From the sequence record OQ411014.1: DNA of 64,000 bases. One strand, written 5' to 3'. This document shows, piece by piece, positions 18,478 through 50,491 of the stretch (position 1 is its first letter; each line of letters opens with the position of its first letter). Below the pieces are notes generated by a model that did no database searches, was not told the DNA's origin, and saw only the letters and a program-made list of their open reading frames with translations. The position numbers and the translations under genes are program-made.

Positions 18478-18507
18478 TTGAGACAAATGCAAAAGATGTG
18501 ATATAAT
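18478..18507 (+). promoter_or_regulatory. Early/middle sigma70-like promoter upstream of clpA
   Basis: TTGAGA-N18-TATAAT with an extended TGTG before the -10; the same motif occurs at 41586, 46471 and 60870. Confidence 0.75.
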
Positions 18508-43568: not shown

Positions 43569-45713
43569 ATGCTTACAATCAAGAATATTACAATGAGAAA
43601 CTTTTTCTCCTTTGGGAATGCACCACAGACTGTAGTACTGGATAGTACTGATATATCCTTAGTTCTGGGTCAGAACAATGATGTACTTCTCGATGGAGCA
43701 GACAATTCCGGTCGTCGTAATGGGGTGGGTAAATCTGCCCTCATTCAAGGCATCGTATATGGTCTGTATGGTAAAAGTATCGGTAATGATATCAAGATTT
43801 CTAACTTGGTGAATAAAATCAACACTAAGAACTGTGAAGTATTCTTAGAGTTCAGTAAAGATGGTGTTGATTATCGAGTTGAGCGTGGGCGTAGCCCAAC
43901 GTATTTCAACTTCATCACCATGAATCAGGATAAAGCTGATGATGAATCTCGTGGTGAGAAGAAAGATACCCAAGAAGATCTAATTGAAGTTCTTGGTATC
44001 TCGCAACAATTGTTTGAACACATTGTAGTACTGAATGCTAACGTTGAGCCGTTCTTGTCATTGCCTGTTATCAAACAGCGTGATATGATTGAAGAACTTC
44101 TTGGTATTACTCAACTAACCGAGAAAGCTGAACTACTAAAGGACATGCATAAAGAATCGAAACGTCAAGCTGAACAAGAAAAGTTCAAGATTGAAACTAT
44201 TACTGCTTCGAACGAGCGTATCCAGCAGAGTATTTCTATTCTCCAGGATCAAGCCGCTGCGTTTGAGAAAGCTAAGTCTGAAAAGATTGATAGTATCCAA
44301 TCTAAGCTGGTGGATTTTGAGGGAGTTGATTTTGCTAACTTATTTGAAGTTGCGACTAAGAATGAGATGGCTAAACAATGTAATGCAGACAGAGCAGTTC
44401 TTGAAGGTCGAGTGAATACACTTGCTCAGAAATATCAAGACTACGATGCACAGTTAGTTGCAAATAAAGAGTTGATTCAACAAAGCATCCAAGAATTGAA
44501 CACTATTGACATTGTTCAGGAATTGAGTAACCACAATGAATTATCTTCGTGGTTAGAATTGGAGAAGATTCTAAAAGAATCATTGAGTACTAAGAAATTC
44601 AAGGAACAACAGATCAGTACTGCTGAACGTAACTTGAATATGCTAAAAAGTACTTTAGCAAAAGAAGAAAGTTCACTCCAAGATGTTCTTGATAACAAAT
44701 GTTCTCTATGTAAGGGTAATCTAGACCATGATGAAAATCATAAAACTCTAAAAGAGAAAGTACTAAGTTCGATTCAATCACTAAAGGAAGAGATTTCAGT
44801 TGTGGAATTGCAGATTAGTGCAACCGTAGCAGAAATTGATGCTTTGGAGATATTTGACTTGCCAGCTAAACCAGTTACAGTGTATCCTACATTGTCTGGT
44901 GCACAACTTCATGAACATAAACTAGCTGAATTAGTAAAACAGTTAGATGAAGTACAGGTCAATATCTATGAAGAAGAGTTACAGAATTCATATGCTAAGT
45001 TAGCAGAGACACCAGTACTGGAAGTACTAGATTGGTATAGTGTTCAAGAAGTTACTGAATTGAATTTCATGTTCGATGGACTAAAGTCTGATTTAGAACG
45101 AGAAATGAAGTCTGAGAATCACTTCGTATCTCAAATTGAGACACTAAAAACTACATCTCTACAAGCTGTATCGTATGATGAGTTCAATGAGTTCGATAAG
45201 TTGGCTAATCACCAAGAATTCTTGGCTAAATTGCTAATCAATAAGGACTCTTATGTTCGTAAACGTATCATTGAACAGAATATCTCGTTCTTGAATACAC
45301 GTTTACAGTACTATATCGATGCTGTTGGTTCATCTCATCAGGTAGTATTCATGAATGACCTAAGTGTTGATATTACATTGAATGACCAGACCTATGACTT
45401 CAAACAATTGTCTCGTGGTGAGCGTACTAGGGTTAACATTGCGTTATCCTTAGCATTCCGTGATACCTATGAGTCTCTATACCAAGCAATTAACCTCATT
45501 TGTATTGATGAGATGATTGATGTTGGTCTTGATAGTTCTGGTGTAATGAAAACGTGGACAATATTCCAAGATCTTGCAGCTATTCGTAACAAGAACGTAT
45601 TTGTCATCTCTCATAGAGAGGAATTACTCAGTAAAACTGACAAGATACTCAAGATTACGAAAGAAGCTGGATTTAGTTCAGTTGCTTATACAACATTGGA
45701 TGATTTTTTCTAA
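43569..45713 (+). CDS. gp46: Recombination ATPase subunit (Rad50/SbcC-like)
   Basis: Walker A NGVGKS, coiled coil with CSLC zinc hook, signature LSRGE, Walker B IDEMID, H-loop VISH. Confidence 0.93.
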   Translation: MLTIKNITMRNFFSFGNAPQTVVLDSTDISLVLGQNNDVLLDGADNSGRRNGVGKSALIQGIVYGLYGKSIGNDIKISNLVNKINTKNCEVFLEFSKDGVDYRVERGRSPTYFNFITMNQDKADDESRGEKKDTQEDLIEVLGISQQLFEHIVVLNANVEPFLSLPVIKQRDMIEELLGITQLTEKAELLKDMHKESKRQAEQEKFKIETITASNERIQQSISILQDQAAAFEKAKSEKIDSIQSKLVDFEGVDFANLFEVATKNEMAKQCNADRAVLEGRVNTLAQKYQDYDAQLVANKELIQQSIQELNTIDIVQELSNHNELSSWLELEKILKESLSTKKFKEQQISTAERNLNMLKSTLAKEESSLQDVLDNKCSLCKGNLDHDENHKTLKEKVLSSIQSLKEEISVVELQISATVAEIDALEIFDLPAKPVTVYPTLSGAQLHEHKLAELVKQLDEVQVNIYEEELQNSYAKLAETPVLEVLDWYSVQEVTELNFMFDGLKSDLEREMKSENHFVSQIETLKTTSLQAVSYDEFNEFDKLANHQEFLAKLLINKDSYVRKRIIEQNISFLNTRLQYYIDAVGSSHQVVFMNDLSVDITLNDQTYDFKQLSRGERTRVNIALSLAFRDTYESLYQAINLICIDEMIDVGLDSSGVMKTWTIFQDLAAIRNKNVFVISHREELLSKTDKILKITKEAGFSSVAYTTLDDFF

Positions 45714-45716
45714 CAG

Positions 45717-45742
45717 AAAGGGAGCTTTATGCTCCCTTTTTT
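45717..45742. terminator. Bidirectional terminator
   Basis: aaagggagc-ttta(t)-gctcccttttttt between convergent gp46 and gp49. Confidence 0.85.
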
Positions 45743-46218
45743 ATTAATCTCATATCTAACTTACCTTCCTTGATGAGTGTCCTCGCTTGGTTGGCTCTTT
45801 TCTTAACATTAGTCTCTGGTTCAGTACCTAATGAACTCAGTACTTCACATTGCTGCTTTGCTGGTAGTGCTTTAAACTTCTTCACATCCACTGTAAGAGC
45901 CGTATGGTGAATAACTTGCTCTTCTGGTGGTATATTGTTATGATGCTCTAGATAGTCTGCTAGATTGCGTAGAACTTCGTATAATGGCTTATCAGTCAAG
46001 TGCCTTACACACCTATTAAATGAGTTCTGTACGCGTCCCTCCCAGCCGTTAACCTCATTCTGTAGTACTCCCCTACAGTGCTGGTTATCTTGGTGGTAGT
46101 GGTCTAATACGGGCTTTGTGATGGGTATTTGAAGGATAGGATCAATACCACCTTGTGCCTTTAGTAGTTCCTTACGATATTTTGCTGCATCGTCAGGGTT
46201 TTTAAGTCTTCTTTTCAT
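45727..46218 (-). CDS. gp49: Recombination endonuclease VII (Holliday junction resolvase), T4 gp49-like
   Basis: QGGIDPIL...PVLDHYH...CRGVLQNEVNGWEG is the Endo VII His-Me finger; C-terminal helical domain present. Confidence 0.8.
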   Translation of the reverse strand: MKRRLKNPDDAAKYRKELLKAQGGIDPILQIPITKPVLDHYHQDNQHCRGVLQNEVNGWEGRVQNSFNRCVRHLTDKPLYEVLRNLADYLEHHNNIPPEEQVIHHTALTVDVKKFKALPAKQQCEVLSSLGTEPETNVKKRANQARTLIKEGKLDMRLIKKGA

Positions 46219-46470
46219 ATCTACACCTTTTGGACAATGATTCTAGTTACTTTATTTAGTTTAAGTACTATCATTGTCATCCACCAGCATTCAGTACTTC
46301 TATTATGCATGTTCTGTGTATACAGGAATCACAAAAGTACTAATGACCTTTCTGAAATCCTTGCAGTACTAAGGATGTCCAAAACTCTTGGAGAATGTAC
46401 TTAGTTGCAGTACATAGAGAAGAGTACTATGCTCACGTAATGAAATTATTTTCGAAAAAGTACTAGAAAA

Positions 46471-46500
46471 ATGAGATGCAAACATAAAATGTGATATAAT
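46471..46500 (+). promoter_or_regulatory. Early/middle sigma70-like promoter with no downstream protein gene
   Basis: ATGAGA-N18-TATAAT (TGTGATATAAT), matching the clpA, gp55 and dsbA promoters. Confidence 0.7.
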
Positions 46501-46506
46501 ATAAGT

Positions 46507-46950
46507 ACAAGTTCATAAGGTCAGTTTTTACTGATACAGATTAAACCCAATTCACTCGAAAATGTAGAGGATGGATGAGTAGACTTATGACTACGTAGTG
46601 CAAAAGAAACCCGTTAGGAGATGGCATAGTTTGTACCACCCACGGCAATGTGGCACTTTAAATGAACGCGATAAGCAGACAGACGTTCACTAGATAGACA
46701 TATAAGGCTACCTTACCACACTTGCTAAGGGAGTTCAGTTCAGAACTTGTTTTGAGCTTGAACAGCATTAAGATTCGATTGTATGGATTTTAATGTATGC
46801 GTACTAAGACTACGACCGTTGCACATGACCGTGATAGAGAGAAACAGAGCAACCCGCTTTCGTTCTGACTTGTTCAGAAATTCACGATACAATAATTCCG
46901 ATGCTATCAGCGTCAAGCAATATTTCAGATCCTTAATTGGGTCTTTTTTA
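46507..46950 (+). ncRNA. Candidate structured non-coding RNA (~440 nt), family unrecognised
   Basis: Bounded by the conserved promoter and a terminator-like gatcc-ttaatt-gggtc-tttttt; several hairpins found by eye (46734-46762, 46765-46796, 46865-46879); no convincing ORF. Confidence 0.45.
46927..46950 (+). terminator. Probable terminator of the non-coding transcript
   Basis: agatcc-ttaatt-gggtct followed by a T-tract. Confidence 0.6.
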
Positions 46951-47179
46951 TTGTCTTCATTCCCCTGCGGGGGGATGAAATTGCCTCAACAAATCTCGTC
47001 AAGTATTAAAGTATTAATTAGTTCTTAATAATTAAATTATTAAATGAATTGAGATTCATTAGAGTGAAACGAAGTGAACGATAAATGAATTGAAGATTCT
47101 TAGACAATCGAAGATTGGCTAATCAAATACTTTCTCCTAAAGAATGATTCAATAATAATTCTTAATGAATTTTAAATAC

Positions 47180-47205
47180 AAAAAAAACCAGCAACAATGT
47201 GCTGG
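47180..47205 (-). terminator. Terminator after the gp26/gp51-like pair
   Basis: Minus strand reads ccagca-cattgt-tgctgg-tttttttt. Confidence 0.8.
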
Positions 47206-47415
47206 CTATTGATTCATTTTCTTCATTCTTTTGTTATACGACTTCACCATTAAATCCCTTGTCTGTACTGGCATATTCAGTAATGACTCATAGGAAGTGT
47301 TCTCTATAGCAACAGCAGCATCCATCAATGACACCTGAATGTCATTGACATTAAACTCCATATCACTTAGAATCTCTTTTATTTCTTCCGGTTCACTAAT
47401 GAGAAGTCTAGTCCG
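47206..47415 (-). CDS. Short gp51-like ORF in the -1 frame of the gp26-like gene (probable frameshift extension)
   Basis: RTRLLISEPEEIKEIL...YESLLNMPVQTRDLMVKSY resembles short ORFs that follow gp26 in T4-like phages; the frame is open from the slippery T-TTT-TTC. Confidence 0.55.
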   Translation of the reverse strand, partial: RTRLLISEPEEIKEILSDMEFNVNDIQVSLMDAAVAIENTSYESLLNMPVQTRDLMVKSYNKRMKKMNQ

Positions 47416-48245
47416 AAAAAATGGGATGGGTCGTATTTTAGTCCAGTCAATTCCCACTGATGATTACAGTTACTACATTCAACATCCATAGTATGACTGA
47501 TACCTACATCAAATACACTATCAGACTTTTCACTAATGATTTTGAGATCATTCTTGTTCAAAGTACCAAGCCATTCAGAAATAAATTCTGGTTCAGTTAC
47601 TTCTTCATCATTAGGAGTGACTATCTTCGCAATACTACTGCAAATCATATCATAGTTCAGTTGAGTCATTTTCTCAAAAATGTCACTGAAAATTTCCATT
47701 CTTTCTTTCTCTTCCAAATCAGCACTCATATCAATAACACGAGAACGACTTTGTTGAGCAAACATACGCTCACCAAAAGCAGAATGCTCTTCCCATGTAT
47801 GTGGTCTAAAGTATACTGTTAGTCCATTTTCCATTAGTACTACAGGCTCTTCAGTAAATGAAGTAGTAGTATTGAGTAGATAGTTCAAATCACGACTAAA
47901 TCCACCCACATGTTCACACTCTGGACATGTAACATTGATATCATATGATTCATCTTTAGTAGCTAATTTAATAGCAATAAGTAGTTGCTCTACGTCGTTT
48001 ACATAGAGTTTAGAAGCATCAAGTACTGAAGGGACACAGTTCTCAATTACTTTAGCAATGGCATCACCACCAATTAGTGCATCAGCAGTATTAAGTAGAA
48101 TTTCATCACGTGCAGAACGAGCACATACACCACACTTAGTATTACTTACTACACCTTCAGGGTACTTGATTACATCGTTTGAAACTAGTTTAGTGAACAG
48201 TACTTCAATTTTACTGTACTGTGACAAAGGGTTCATCTTGCTCAT
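47379..48245 (-). CDS. gp26: Baseplate hub assembly protein, T4 gp26-like
   Basis: NPLSQY, ARDEILL...ALIGG.AI..VIENCVP, DVEQLLIAIKLAT, and two CxxC pairs (CPEC, CSNC). Confidence 0.75.
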   Translation of the reverse strand: MSKMNPLSQYSKIEVLFTKLVSNDVIKYPEGVVSNTKCGVCARSARDEILLNTADALIGGDAIAKVIENCVPSVLDASKLYVNDVEQLLIAIKLATKDESYDINVTCPECEHVGGFSRDLNYLLNTTTSFTEEPVVLMENGLTVYFRPHTWEEHSAFGERMFAQQSRSRVIDMSADLEEKERMEIFSDIFEKMTQLNYDMICSSIAKIVTPNDEEVTEPEFISEWLGTLNKNDLKIISEKSDSVFDVGISHTMDVECSNCNHQWELTGLKYDPSHFFGLDFSLVNRKK

Positions 48246-48298: not shown

Positions 48299-50491
48299 AT
48301 GGCAATTTCACAGAGTGATTACTTATTGCAAGAGATGTTGAATAAATCATCCAGTGCAAATGATAATCTTAGTGCTATGCGTGATTTGCTCATAGAACTG
48401 AATAAAAACGTTAAAAAAGGGTCAAGTAACTCACCTGGGAGTGGTGGTGGCGGTGGTTCTGGTGGTGGCGGCAGCGGCAGTTCTGATAGTAATGGAGCAG
48501 ATCCGAAGAAGTACTCAAACATGTTTAAACAGATGTTCGGTAATATGAGAGGGGCCGGAAACACCATACTTGGAAACAACGGAAATGCTGCTAACGTAAT
48601 GGGTTCACTAGGAACTACAGCAACTGGCCTTGCATCGTCATTAGGTAGGGCAATTCCAGTAGTTGGTGGGGTAACTCAAGCATTTACATTATTAGTAGAC
48701 GCTGGAATGGCAGTTTACAACTATATGAATGCTCAGTTGGAGATGTATAATGAGTTAAACAGTTCAGGTTTGACACTTGCAACTGGTATGAGTACGCTAG
48801 AACGTGCTTCTGCTAAGAGTTTGATGAGTAATGCAGAATTTGGTGAAGCATTGAAACGAAACTCTGACGTTTTAGCAGCTATGGAAGGTCAATATGGTCA
48901 TGGTGTTGAAGGTTTTGGTAATTTATTGAATACAGTTCAGAAATTGCAATCAGTTAACGGTCTATATGGTGTTTCTCAACAACAATTAGCTGATATGGCA
49001 GCAAGAAACTTCAAATATCAGAAATTATATGGCACACAAGAGTCATTACGCTCTGCTGCACAGGCTCAAAGTACTGATCTCTTTGTTCGTCAGATGACTT
49101 CATTGAGTAAGAGTGTTGGTAAGAGTGTTGACCAACTATTAGGTAATTTTGAGAACCTAACTGACAGTTTTGACAGTCAAACAAACGCCCGTTCATTGGA
49201 ACGTTTCTGGGGTCTATCAACAGACCAAGCGGCTGATGTAAACAAGGCAATGAACACTGTTTATGCTAGTTTAGGTGAAGTTGGTGTTAAGTTGCAAGCA
49301 GCAAACACTATGAAAATGTCCCAACAGCCATTGACTGAAGAATTTAATAACTTTTTTACACAAATGTTAACCGATAGAATGCGTGAAATACAACGTGCTG
49401 GTGTAAAAGATCCGAAACAAATACAGAAATATCTATCTGACTATATAAAATCTCATCAAAAGCAATTGCAGCTTGAAATTGATGCACAATATGATGCAAA
49501 AAATATACCAGCAGCAAAATTCCTTGAAGATTTGCGTAATTCAATGCAAATGTTGAACGAAAATACTTCTGATGTTAGTCCAGTAATGGAAGAATTTACA
49601 AATAGATTCAATACATGGCTACAAGACTCAGTAACTGGACCATTTAAAACTATGTGGGCTGATACACGTGATAGTGCATTGCGTTATTTGATGGATACAT
49701 ATGATTCAGTTGACAGTATATTCATGATGCCAGCACAAATGATGAAAGATTTGTTATCATATATAACTGAAGGTATGGGAGGAATGGGAACTCTGTTCTT
49801 AGGACTACCAGGACAACTGATGGATATAATTACAACAAACTTTGGTCCTGTTAAGGAAGCATTTGGTAAATTCATGGGTGATTTGATGGATATCCCAGGT
49901 CGATTGGGTGAATTCCTATGGGGAATGCTCACTGGTGATGGTTTATCTAAGAGTGCTGAGGGTCTTCAGAAGACAATTAATAGTCTATTTGGTCATATTA
50001 CTGAGATGTTTGACGGTATTATGGATTTAGAATTCAATTATGATGACATGAAAGAGAAAGTACTGGGTGTTTTCCAATCAATGAAGGATAAATTATCTGG
50101 AATTTGGGATAGTGCTAAGTCATGGATTATGGGTGACGACAAAAAAACACCAGAACCTAGTAAAAAATCCAAAACTGAAAAACTTTCAGAGAAAAATAAG
50201 ACAGAAACTAAAGCACCAACGCCTCCACCTACTAGTGTTGAGAAGAAACATCAAACAGCACAGGTAACGGAACCTCCACAATATACAAAACCTGAGAAAA
50301 TTGAGAAGGTAGAGAAGGAAGTAGCACCAGTAATGGATGTTGCTAACAATCAAGCGACGCTAGAAGAGAGCATTTTAAAAACACTAAATAATCTCATGAG
50401 TGTTGCAGAACAAACTAACCAAATCAATAATAACGCTGGCATGTATCTACGTCAAATCGCAGAAAACACCGCTGGTGCACAGAATGTATAA
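48299..50491 (+). CDS. Tape-measure-like / baseplate hub protein (gp29-like)
   Basis: 730 aa, helical and Ala/Gly/Met-rich with periodic aromatics; divergent from the gp26-like gene; late-promoter-like CATAAATA at 48259-48266. Confidence 0.55.
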   Translation: MAISQSDYLLQEMLNKSSSANDNLSAMRDLLIELNKNVKKGSSNSPGSGGGGGSGGGGSGSSDSNGADPKKYSNMFKQMFGNMRGAGNTILGNNGNAANVMGSLGTTATGLASSLGRAIPVVGGVTQAFTLLVDAGMAVYNYMNAQLEMYNELNSSGLTLATGMSTLERASAKSLMSNAEFGEALKRNSDVLAAMEGQYGHGVEGFGNLLNTVQKLQSVNGLYGVSQQQLADMAARNFKYQKLYGTQESLRSAAQAQSTDLFVRQMTSLSKSVGKSVDQLLGNFENLTDSFDSQTNARSLERFWGLSTDQAADVNKAMNTVYASLGEVGVKLQAANTMKMSQQPLTEEFNNFFTQMLTDRMREIQRAGVKDPKQIQKYLSDYIKSHQKQLQLEIDAQYDAKNIPAAKFLEDLRNSMQMLNENTSDVSPVMEEFTNRFNTWLQDSVTGPFKTMWADTRDSALRYLMDTYDSVDSIFMMPAQMMKDLLSYITEGMGGMGTLFLGLPGQLMDIITTNFGPVKEAFGKFMGDLMDIPGRLGEFLWGMLTGDGLSKSAEGLQKTINSLFGHITEMFDGIMDLEFNYDDMKEKVLGVFQSMKDKLSGIWDSAKSWIMGDDKKTPEPSKKSKTEKLSEKNKTETKAPTPPPTSVEKKHQTAQVTEPPQYTKPEKIEKVEKEVAPVMDVANNQATLEESILKTLNNLMSVAEQTNQINNNAGMYLRQIAENTAGAQNV

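Follow-up and report, generated by a model that had tools for sequence, protein, structure and literature searches.

In the genome of Escherichia phage EJP2 (Asteriusvirus; 349,185 bp; OQ411014.1), a gap of ~990 bp without major annotated genes contains a phage promoter, and the question raised by this locus is what that promoter transcribes. All coordinates refer to a window of 64,000 nt from this genome, i.e., the whole stretch of DNA that was analysed; the record position equals the window position plus 124,000. The gap (46219-47205) is flanked by an endonuclease VII gene (45727-46218, - strand) on one side and by a small open reading frame (ORF) and a baseplate-hub-like gene (47206-48245, - strand) on the other. 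The EJP2 record annotates in it only two tiny "hypothetical proteins", 5' of the promoter, and leaves 46500-47205 blank. A preliminary description of the window had proposed a hairpin-rich transcript of ~440 nt with no protein gene, running from a promoter at 46471-46500 to a terminator at 46927-46950. Our analysis indicates that the + strand from 46471 to ~47003 is almost certainly the gene for a large non-coding RNA (ncRNA) whose pseudoknotted fold is conserved and in which many unpaired bases are invariant, that this gene is one of five ancient EJP2 paralogues, and that it belongs to a family that is not in Rfam 15 but occurs in all Rak2-like phages searched and, as single copies, in small integrase-bearing islands of Enterobacterales. 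The gene probably extends further, to ~47125.

Folding of the single sequence against shuffles gave z = -2.1 for the + strand and z = -0.6 for the - strand; these values are modest and one sequence alone is insufficient, so that the case is made by comparison. An alignment of 30 copies produced with MAFFT contained 89 invariant columns, broken up by helices that are divergent yet complementary, and RNAalifold predicted 72 pairs, 44 of which showed compensatory double changes. Using 60 representatives chosen at <=93% identity and 92 predicted pairs, 94.7% of cells were canonical, as compared with 77% in column shuffles and ~40% in slid controls, and compensatory cells numbered 929 against a shuffle mean of 240 and maximum of 296. 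In an independent alignment (A2; 41 sequences, covering 46763-46896), 95.8% of cells paired, versus 70.6% when shuffled and 35-51% when slid; changes on both sides were present in 35 of the 43 pairs, and none of 500 shuffles reached any observed measure. A covariation scan also revealed a pseudoknot, absent from the nested prediction, between 46778-46783 and 46888-46893, in which all six pairs covary and 99.6% of cells pair (A2). The 130-nt subdomain contains 29 invariant columns.

The argument that G-U pairs favour an RNA of the + strand, already made in the preliminary description, was borne out across the family. G-U cells outnumbered A-C cells by 571 to 93, and pairing dropped to 87% if the alignment was read as the - strand; this excess indicates that the selected structure belongs to the + strand transcript. 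The opposite possibility, that a small ORF or spurious structure accounts for the region, draws on an ORF of 81 codons (46783-47028) in the window copy and on records that annotate "hypothetical proteins" there. It retains next to no probability, however, as chance is excluded by the covariation statistics, the 81-codon ORF is not conserved in place or length, and the alignment indels of the 30 copies are not multiples of three. Indeed, the longest ORFs of these 30 family members vary in both place and length and include no conserved ORF, in keeping with the earlier view that no credible ORF is present. The tiny "hypothetical protein" coding sequences at 46237-46485 and over the RNA in other phages (7t3, Hallingskeid, PHA46, SD-2_S15) are probably spurious, and those calls that lie over RNA copies (7t3, Hallingskeid, PHA46) need correcting.

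Several helices that had been picked out by eye in the window copy were found to covary, namely gaacg/cgttc (46663-67/46685-89), AAGG/CCUU (46704-07/46711-14), a stem of 12-13 bp (46765-77/46784-96) and tctga/tcaga (46863-67/46875-79). Others survived in part: in a proposed stem of ~14 bp the closing pairs (46733-37/46759-63) covary while the rest is variable, and a hairpin occupies the place of the 5' tcagt/actga in most copies, with unrelated sequence. The pairing tcataag/cttatga was discarded since it conflicts with a covarying hairpin (46579-83/46590-94), ccac/gtgg is not conserved among the other copies, and a 5'-3' closure by ctgata/tatcag shows no covariation. A different candidate closing helix proposed by RNAalifold, GAUGAG of the 5' part with CUCGUC of the 3' part, consists of bases that are invariant or uncompensated in divergent members.

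We also compared the element with known RNAs. A search of 45500-48000 with the 4227 models of Rfam 15, among them RNase P, tmRNA, group I/II introns, 6S, GOLLD, ROOL, OLE, HEARO, hammerhead and riboswitches, yielded at E <= 10 only weak terminator-type matches outside the core, and nine other copies searched at E <= 5 gave nothing on the element. ARAGORN detected no tRNA or tmRNA genes in the window. The lack of Rfam and ARAGORN matches agrees with the earlier statement that the element is not a tRNA, tmRNA, RNase P or group I intron, and, together with the covariation, the strand-specific G-U pairs and the lack of a conserved ORF, strongly supports the proposal of a large structured phage RNA. 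A possible likeness to the specificity domain of RNase P M1 was rejected: nhmmer found no match to E. coli rnpB, covariance model R1 misses rnpB, and the Smith-Waterman score of 22 between the RNA and rnpB was equalled or exceeded by 24 of 300 shuffles (18.2 +/- 2.1). A hammerhead-like arrangement, CUGAUGAG...GAAA, was likewise rejected, as the motif does not fit and Rfam gave no match.

Full-text literature searches, and the CBB and jumbo-phage comparative papers, gave no account of this RNA. The Pseudomonas jumbo phage PA5oct, a distant relative, does produce long promoter-proximal ncRNAs (ncRNA001-004; 236-619 nt, without ORFs), two of which make up 1.2-5.1% of phage reads at three time points (PMC7318152). 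Their abundance indicates that phages of this kind make abundant long ncRNAs; homology of our RNA to ncRNA001-004 was not detected by nhmmer, motif search or covariance model. The RNA resembles GOLLD and ROOL in its length of several hundred nt, its covarying helices, pseudoknots and conserved unpaired bases, its carriage by phages or mobile elements, the lack of a protein partner encoded alongside, and an unknown function. It differs from them in that no Rfam model matches it, in forming five fixed, ancient paralogues per genome, and in that each copy has its own promoter and no adjoining tRNA genes.

In order to describe the family, we turn to its phage members. DNA from ~46534 to 47209 matched 62 phage records at 67-89% identity (BLAST), all of them Rak2-like jumbo phages, including 121Q, PBECO4, phAPEC6, Munch, 7t3, GAP32, CBB, Serratia BF, Erwinia pEa_SNUABM, Yersinia fHe-Yen9 and XbC2; a second query added RaK2 and K64-1, for a total of 72 records. 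Each phage record has 4-5 matching places, most records annotate nothing over them and others small "hypothetical proteins", and with 121Q-type phages the conservation extends to ~47209. Synteny with the endonuclease VII and baseplate-hub genes is kept in UE-S1 and G17, and the match in Hallingskeid adjoins an annotated endonuclease VII. The whole EJP2 genome contains five copies at record positions 36.8, 90.7, 170.5 (the window copy), 250.4 and 293.1 kb, all on the + strand and each in its own annotation gap with its own TGTGATATAAT promoter. A covariance model of the 130-position subdomain gave exactly five matches in this genome, all on the + strand with E <= 1e-23. Pattern scans recovered 29 copies from IMG/VR and 85 metagenome stretches, with 3-5 pattern-matching copies in each complete contig of ~350-370 kb, and a second DNA pattern found no additional members on viral contigs. 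In a tree of 87 distinct sequences, the five EJP2 copies each fell into a different clade, together with copies from other genomes, which indicates that the duplications are older than the divergence of these genera. No match was found on 72,556 plasmids, and the family is, as far as searched, confined to Rak2-like jumbo phages and enterobacterial islands.

Among 5,426 complete E. coli genomes, two carry a copy that spans the full length of the family profile. That of E. coli LR-29-1 (L168) lies in an island of ~10.8 kb between ffs and ybaA, which also encodes a resolvase, a DuOB/DUF488/mSLOG-DUF4326 cluster, membrane and secreted proteins, and a tyrosine integrase interrupted by IS3. When one genome per species was scanned, nine further such copies came to light, in Buttiauxella, Silvania, Citrobacter amalonaticus, Enterobacter chinensis, two Serratia, two other Enterobacteriaceae and one metagenome-assembled genome that is probably mis-binned. 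In the usual island order, an integrase of the tyrosine or large serine type precedes the RNA; next come a CI-like S24 repressor, encoded on the opposite strand, an HTH_35 protein, a protein with three transmembrane segments, a secreted protein (LprI-like or other) and a resolvase. In some islands the RNA is the first element inside the edge. None of the island proteins has a BLAST relative beside the phage copies or looks RNA-binding, the neighbours examined being integrases, the CI-like S24 repressor, HTH_35, the three-transmembrane membrane protein, LprI-like secreted proteins and the resolvase. Island copies carry phage-type promoters and are interleaved with the phage clades in the tree of 87 sequences, which implies at least three transfers.

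Two further observations concern particular islands. In LR-29-1, the trio of mSLOG-DUF4326, DUF488 and dual-OB (DuOB) proteins (L168:11882-13613) lies 2.5 kb from the RNA copy; the trio was scanned against Pfam and PHROGs only, and we suspect a conflict or defence system. In Serratia fonticola (L176), the RNA copy adjoins the host genes tilS and rof, on the border of an element that has two ParB/RepB-like genes and a large serine recombinase, unlike the islands of the integrase-RNA-repressor type.

At its 3' end, the element departs from the preliminary description. The hairpin and T-run at 46927-46950 (T1 in Table 1) were found as described, but they do not mark the boundary of the family, since this terminator is an optional insert and the conserved RNA continues past it; the transcript of ~440 nt stands as a short form of a longer conserved unit that reaches ~47003 and probably ~47125. 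A terminator is present at the T1 position in 20 of the 60 representatives under a strict rule, with unrelated stems (e.g., AGAUCC/GGGUCU, AGUAC/GUACU, GAGAC/GUCUC, GCAC/GUGC), and a weaker one in the c2 clade, so that overall about a third to a half of copies have the insert. On the 3' side of this place every copy has hairpin H2 and then Box B, a direct repeat of Box A, and beyond Box B the phage and island copies share small covarying hairpins up to ~47125. In EJP2, the RNAs of copies c1, c4 and c5 have no terminator ahead of the next + strand ORF, which begins 107-171 nt past Box B.

Box A and Box B vary in concert, both at a U/C position and in the replacement of CGUCA by UGUCA, CGACA or CUUCA in both. 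This can be understood, at least in part, from the anti-box (46900-46904), which pairs with Box A and can also pair with Box B. In the L175 lineage, anti-box, Box A and Box B have all changed compensatingly (GUCGAU / AUCGACA / GCGACA), and in members of the c2 clade GUCAG from Box A doubles as the terminator's 5' arm, in addition to the pairing of Box A with the anti-box. By analogy, this sharing of strands is a kind of attenuator-like arrangement, and one that is not uniform across copies. A partner for Box A or Box B in P1, the GAUGAG motif or the H2 flank was sought, and no covariation was seen. A presumed likeness of GCCUCAACAAAUC to the rrn or lambda boxA was given no weight.

The co-varying direct repeats could instead be recombination or insertion scars of a mobile element, of which the RNA, tied to an integrase or att sites, would be a relic or component; island RNAs do adjoin a tyrosine or large serine integrase or the island edge, and the tree intersperses island copies with those of phages. 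We regard this as very unlikely, given that no recombinase is found near the phage copies, that the paralogues, being ancient and syntenic, do not look recently mobile, and that pairing with the anti-box explains the repeats at least partly.

Among uncertain options, our first choice, held tentatively and, with identity and mechanism taken jointly, at well short of even confidence, is that the RNA is a very large leader, heading a transcription unit, which acts in cis on the complex that transcribes it or on the transcript itself. The conserved core would fold during synthesis, and the 3' domain (anti-box, Box A, optional T1, H2, Box B) would pair in alternative ways, the choice of pairing setting whether transcription stops, giving the RNA of ~440 nt, or continues through the conserved 3' modules to the genes that follow. 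Such a choice would obey the logic of promoter-proximal antitermination or attenuation sites, and islands may have captured the element with its phage-type promoter to get their own genes transcribed during jumbo-phage infection. We favour this reading because every copy of the RNA directly follows a strong promoter; because the terminator, where present, sits within a conserved unit with covarying sequence past it; because EJP2 copies c1, c4 and c5 lead into ORFs without a terminator; because the 3' domain has alternative pairings (anti-box with Box A or Box B, and Box A within the c2 terminator); and because the five loci are fixed in synteny and spread 43-93 kb apart. HK022 put, lambda nut/qut, EAR and attenuators similarly lie directly 3' of a promoter, and the RNA shares with such elements a terminator soon after in many copies, conserved sequence past that terminator and alternative pairings of the 3' domain.

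Several points weigh against a role as a cis-acting leader. Known RNA antiterminators measure ~70-120 nt (HK022 put, EAR) and not ~500 nt, so that the present RNA is ~5x larger, and the Rfam searches showed nothing resembling them; neither sequence nor structure matches. T1 is missing from more than half of the copies, and a terminator precedes only one of the five EJP2 promoters. Some copies have no co-oriented genes on their 3' side: the next genes of the window copy are on the - strand, with the + strand block resuming only at 48299, and in Serratia-type islands the opposite strand is used for >=3.7 kb downstream. The late-promoter-like TATAAAG after Box B could drive downstream genes independently, and the literature on Asteriusvirus and its relatives yielded no transcriptome. 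Finally, the conservation of unpaired bases suits a trans-acting ribonucleoprotein (RNP) or ribozyme just as well.

It is possible, if on balance doubtful, that the element is a stable RNA or RNP working in trans, which binds or acts upon a macromolecule of the host or the phage and functions as a scaffold, decoy, sponge or ribozyme, with the five paralogues providing dosage or different specificities and the island copy serving as an anti-phage decoy or a useful accessory gene. The rich fold, with a pseudoknot and many invariant unpaired bases in the core, favours such an RNA. In addition, the window copy and many island copies (e.g., Serratia) lack a co-oriented gene directly downstream, and a discrete RNA of ~440 nt would be released by the terminator that directly follows the core in between a third and a half of copies. 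The island gene sits between the integrase and the CI-like repressor, a place in which prophages often keep exclusion genes. However, no target, partner protein or catalytic motif was found, the island proteins have no BLAST relatives beside the phage copies, and a function in trans leaves the fixed, dispersed positions and the conserved sequence past the terminator unexplained.

The positions themselves were then considered. The gaps between the five EJP2 loci measure 54, 80, 80, 43 and 93 kb, and a smallest gap this large among five random points on a circle has a calculated P of ~0.02; spacing more even than random favours a position-dependent role, as weak evidence. One such role, which had been offered in the preliminary description as an alternative to a structured RNA, is that of a replication origin, the transcript forming a persistent R-loop that primes DNA synthesis as at T4 oriF/oriG or with ColE1 RNA II. 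The five copies would then be phage origins, one of which islands captured for amplification, and perhaps transduction, by the infecting phage. The copies are indeed dispersed over fixed places 43-93 kb apart on one strand, each with a promoter upstream, and for T4, too, several origins relying on transcripts from promoters are reported. As in ColE1 RNA II and the T4 origins, a promoter-driven transcript of ~0.5 kb has a G-run and an A+T-rich stretch near its end, in this case an invariant G6 run on the non-template strand; EJP2 also encodes RNase HI, a Pol I-like enzyme and T4-type recombination/replication genes, whereas the islands hold the RNA and no recognisable replication gene. Nevertheless, we consider an origin unlikely. 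GC skew tracks gene orientation and gives no signal at the five loci, none of the plasmids searched carries a relative, the A+T-rich spacer is not uniform among island copies, and the fold is conserved far beyond need, as T4 R-loop origins require no elaborate RNA fold.

The readings that depend on position can also be brought together: the five position-fixed RNAs may be "entry sites" acting in cis, either folded-RNA-primed origins or sites that render the transcription complex resistant to termination, which islands repeatedly captured to ride on the infecting phage (amplification, expression, transduction) or to sabotage it; alternatively, the RNA may be a new large ribozyme or the core of a new RNP. 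We offer this as a speculative and rather unlikely proposal. If it were true, the entry sites would constitute an RNA-based interface between helper and satellite, or between phage and defence, undescribed so far.

Whichever function applies, the family is a real and previously uncatalogued one of large structured RNAs that has been repeatedly exchanged with chromosomal islands. Very few large bacterial or phage RNAs are so conserved, and each one found has opened new work (RNase P, tmRNA, group I/II introns, OLE, GOLLD, ROOL). The distinctive features here are a length of ~0.5 kb, a covarying pseudoknot, dozens of invariant bases and several old, fixed paralogues in each Rak2-like phage searched. 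The RNA could bear on the ways in which phage genomes of 350 kb use host enzymes to organise transcription or replication, and in which mobile islands resist jumbo phages or profit from them. Carrier phages include therapy candidates against E. coli, Klebsiella, Salmonella and Erwinia, and the exchange with islands makes the function accessible to ordinary phage genetics in laboratory strains.

The features of the window copy are collected in Table 1.

Table 1. Promoter, structural elements and 3' region of the RNA gene in EJP2 (window coordinates).
Feature	Position	Strand	Remarks
Promoter	46471-46500	+	-35-like ATGAGA 46471-76; extended -10 TGTGATATAAT 46490-46500; predicted start near 46506-46508
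Variable 5' hairpin UCAGU/ACUGA	46520-46535	+	Unrelated hairpin sequence here in most copies
P1 helix (46547-57/46567-74), conserved loop CGAAAAUGUA	46547-46574	+	7/8 pairs covary
Invariant GAUGAG, then hairpin P2 (46579-83/46590-94)	46576-46594	+	
P3 (46597-601/46653-57) around GAAACCCGUUAG, variable insert, P3a (46611-14/46642-45) and CACGGCAAUG	46597-46657	+	
P4 hairpin UGAAC/GUUCA	46663-46689	+	5/5 pairs covary
Conserved GAUAGAC, hairpin AAGG/CCUU (46704-07/46711-14), invariant CUAAGGGA (46725-32)	46693-46732	+	
Variable stem P6	46733-46763	+	Closing 5 pairs covary; insert module UACAAUAUAGAUCCGUCCAAAAUUU in other copies
Long hairpin P7, 13 bp (46765-77/46784-96)	46765-46796	+	Double changes in 12/13 pairs
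Pseudoknot 5' strand, P7 loop AUUGUA	46778-46783	+	Partner 46888-46893
Hairpin P8 (46799-804/46810-16), invariant ACGACCGUUG (46812-21), small invariant helix	46799-46829	+	
P9 (46830-34/46882-86) around P10 (46837-41/46857-61) and P11 (46863-67/46875-79)	46830-46886	+	
Pseudoknot 3' strand UACAAU	46888-46893	+	
Hairpin P-A: anti-box GAUGC (46900-04) with Box A GCGUC (46910-14)	46900-46917	+	
Box A motif CUAUCAGCGUCAAG	46904-46917	+	
T1, intrinsic-terminator-like hairpin (46927-46944) and U-run	46927-46950	+	Optional insert
G+C-rich hairpin H2, UUCAUUCCCC-UGC-GGGGGGAUGAA	46956-46979	+	
Box B AAAUCUCGUCAAG, direct repeat of Box A	46991-47003	+	
Probable 3' extension (candidate part of transcript)	47004-47125	+	Kept in phage and island copies

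Some of these elements call for comment. P2 appears in the paralogues as GUAG/CUAC, GUAC/GUAC, GCAUG/CAUGC and GUUG/CAAC, whereas for 46693-46732 the exact pairing is less certain, as the alignment is gappy there. P10 has an invariant loop, GAAACAGAGCAACCCGC, at 46841-57. The 3' arm of H2, GGGGGGAUGAA, is invariant, and its 5' arm varies only between C and U opposite G (UG:19 / CG:11 and similar). The 3' extension comprises an A+T-rich spacer, the late-promoter-like motif TATTAAAG, a module GAAUUGAG...CGAAGUGA and a hairpin GACAAUCGAAGAUUGGC (47103-19), the last of which covaries (CAAU/AUUG, CAUU/AAUG, CAUA/UAUG). A module of ~25 nt, (G)UAC(A/G)NUAUAG(A/U)UCCGUC(C)AAAAUUU, is found at either of two places depending on the copy, i.e., the P6 stem or the P11 loop (A1 columns ~370-403 and ~545-570; e.g., L008:13700-13735 and L009:6770-6800), and looks like a movable structural module.

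The promoter is of the sigma-70 type with an extended -10, matching the consensus at 10 of 12 positions with TG present. As the preliminary description had it, this is one of four copies in the window, TGTGATATAAT occurring with <=1 mismatch at 18497, 40071, 41605 and 46490; a TGAGA(C/T) -35-like box is common to the sites at 18497, 41605, 46490 and 60889. The class can be written as TGAGA(C/T)-N16-17-TGTGATATAAT, or as TGAGA(C/T)-N16-17-TG(T/C)GATATAAT. The whole EJP2 genome has 25 exact copies of the extended -10, only five of which head an RNA copy, and all five EJP2 RNAs, like the copy in the E. coli island, are preceded by this promoter type. RpoD-like, TGAAACG-type and ATAAATA late promoters have been described in such phages (CBB paper), and both our promoter class and the TATAAAG-like motif after Box B agree with these types.

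Elsewhere in the EJP2 genome, the largest gene-poor gap seen, of ~2.2 kb with two tiny annotated ORFs (record 336,379-338,567; L010:379-2567), gave no match to the RNA covariance model. Beside the RNA gene, a hairpin CCAGCA-N6-TGCTGG with a T-run on the - strand (47186-47207) is the terminator of the baseplate-hub operon; it is oriented toward the RNA gene, and in the + direction it is weak. In the window, the palindrome AGTACT is found 175 times, in genic and intergenic DNA, as compared with 25 +/- 5.6 times in shuffles. Six copies, plus near-copies, crowd 46264-46464, in the 200 bp immediately 5' of the RNA promoter, a stretch annotated as a repeat region in the UE-S1 record, and AGTACT also recurs within hairpin stems of the RNA family. 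This excess could reflect a site for modification, binding or packaging.

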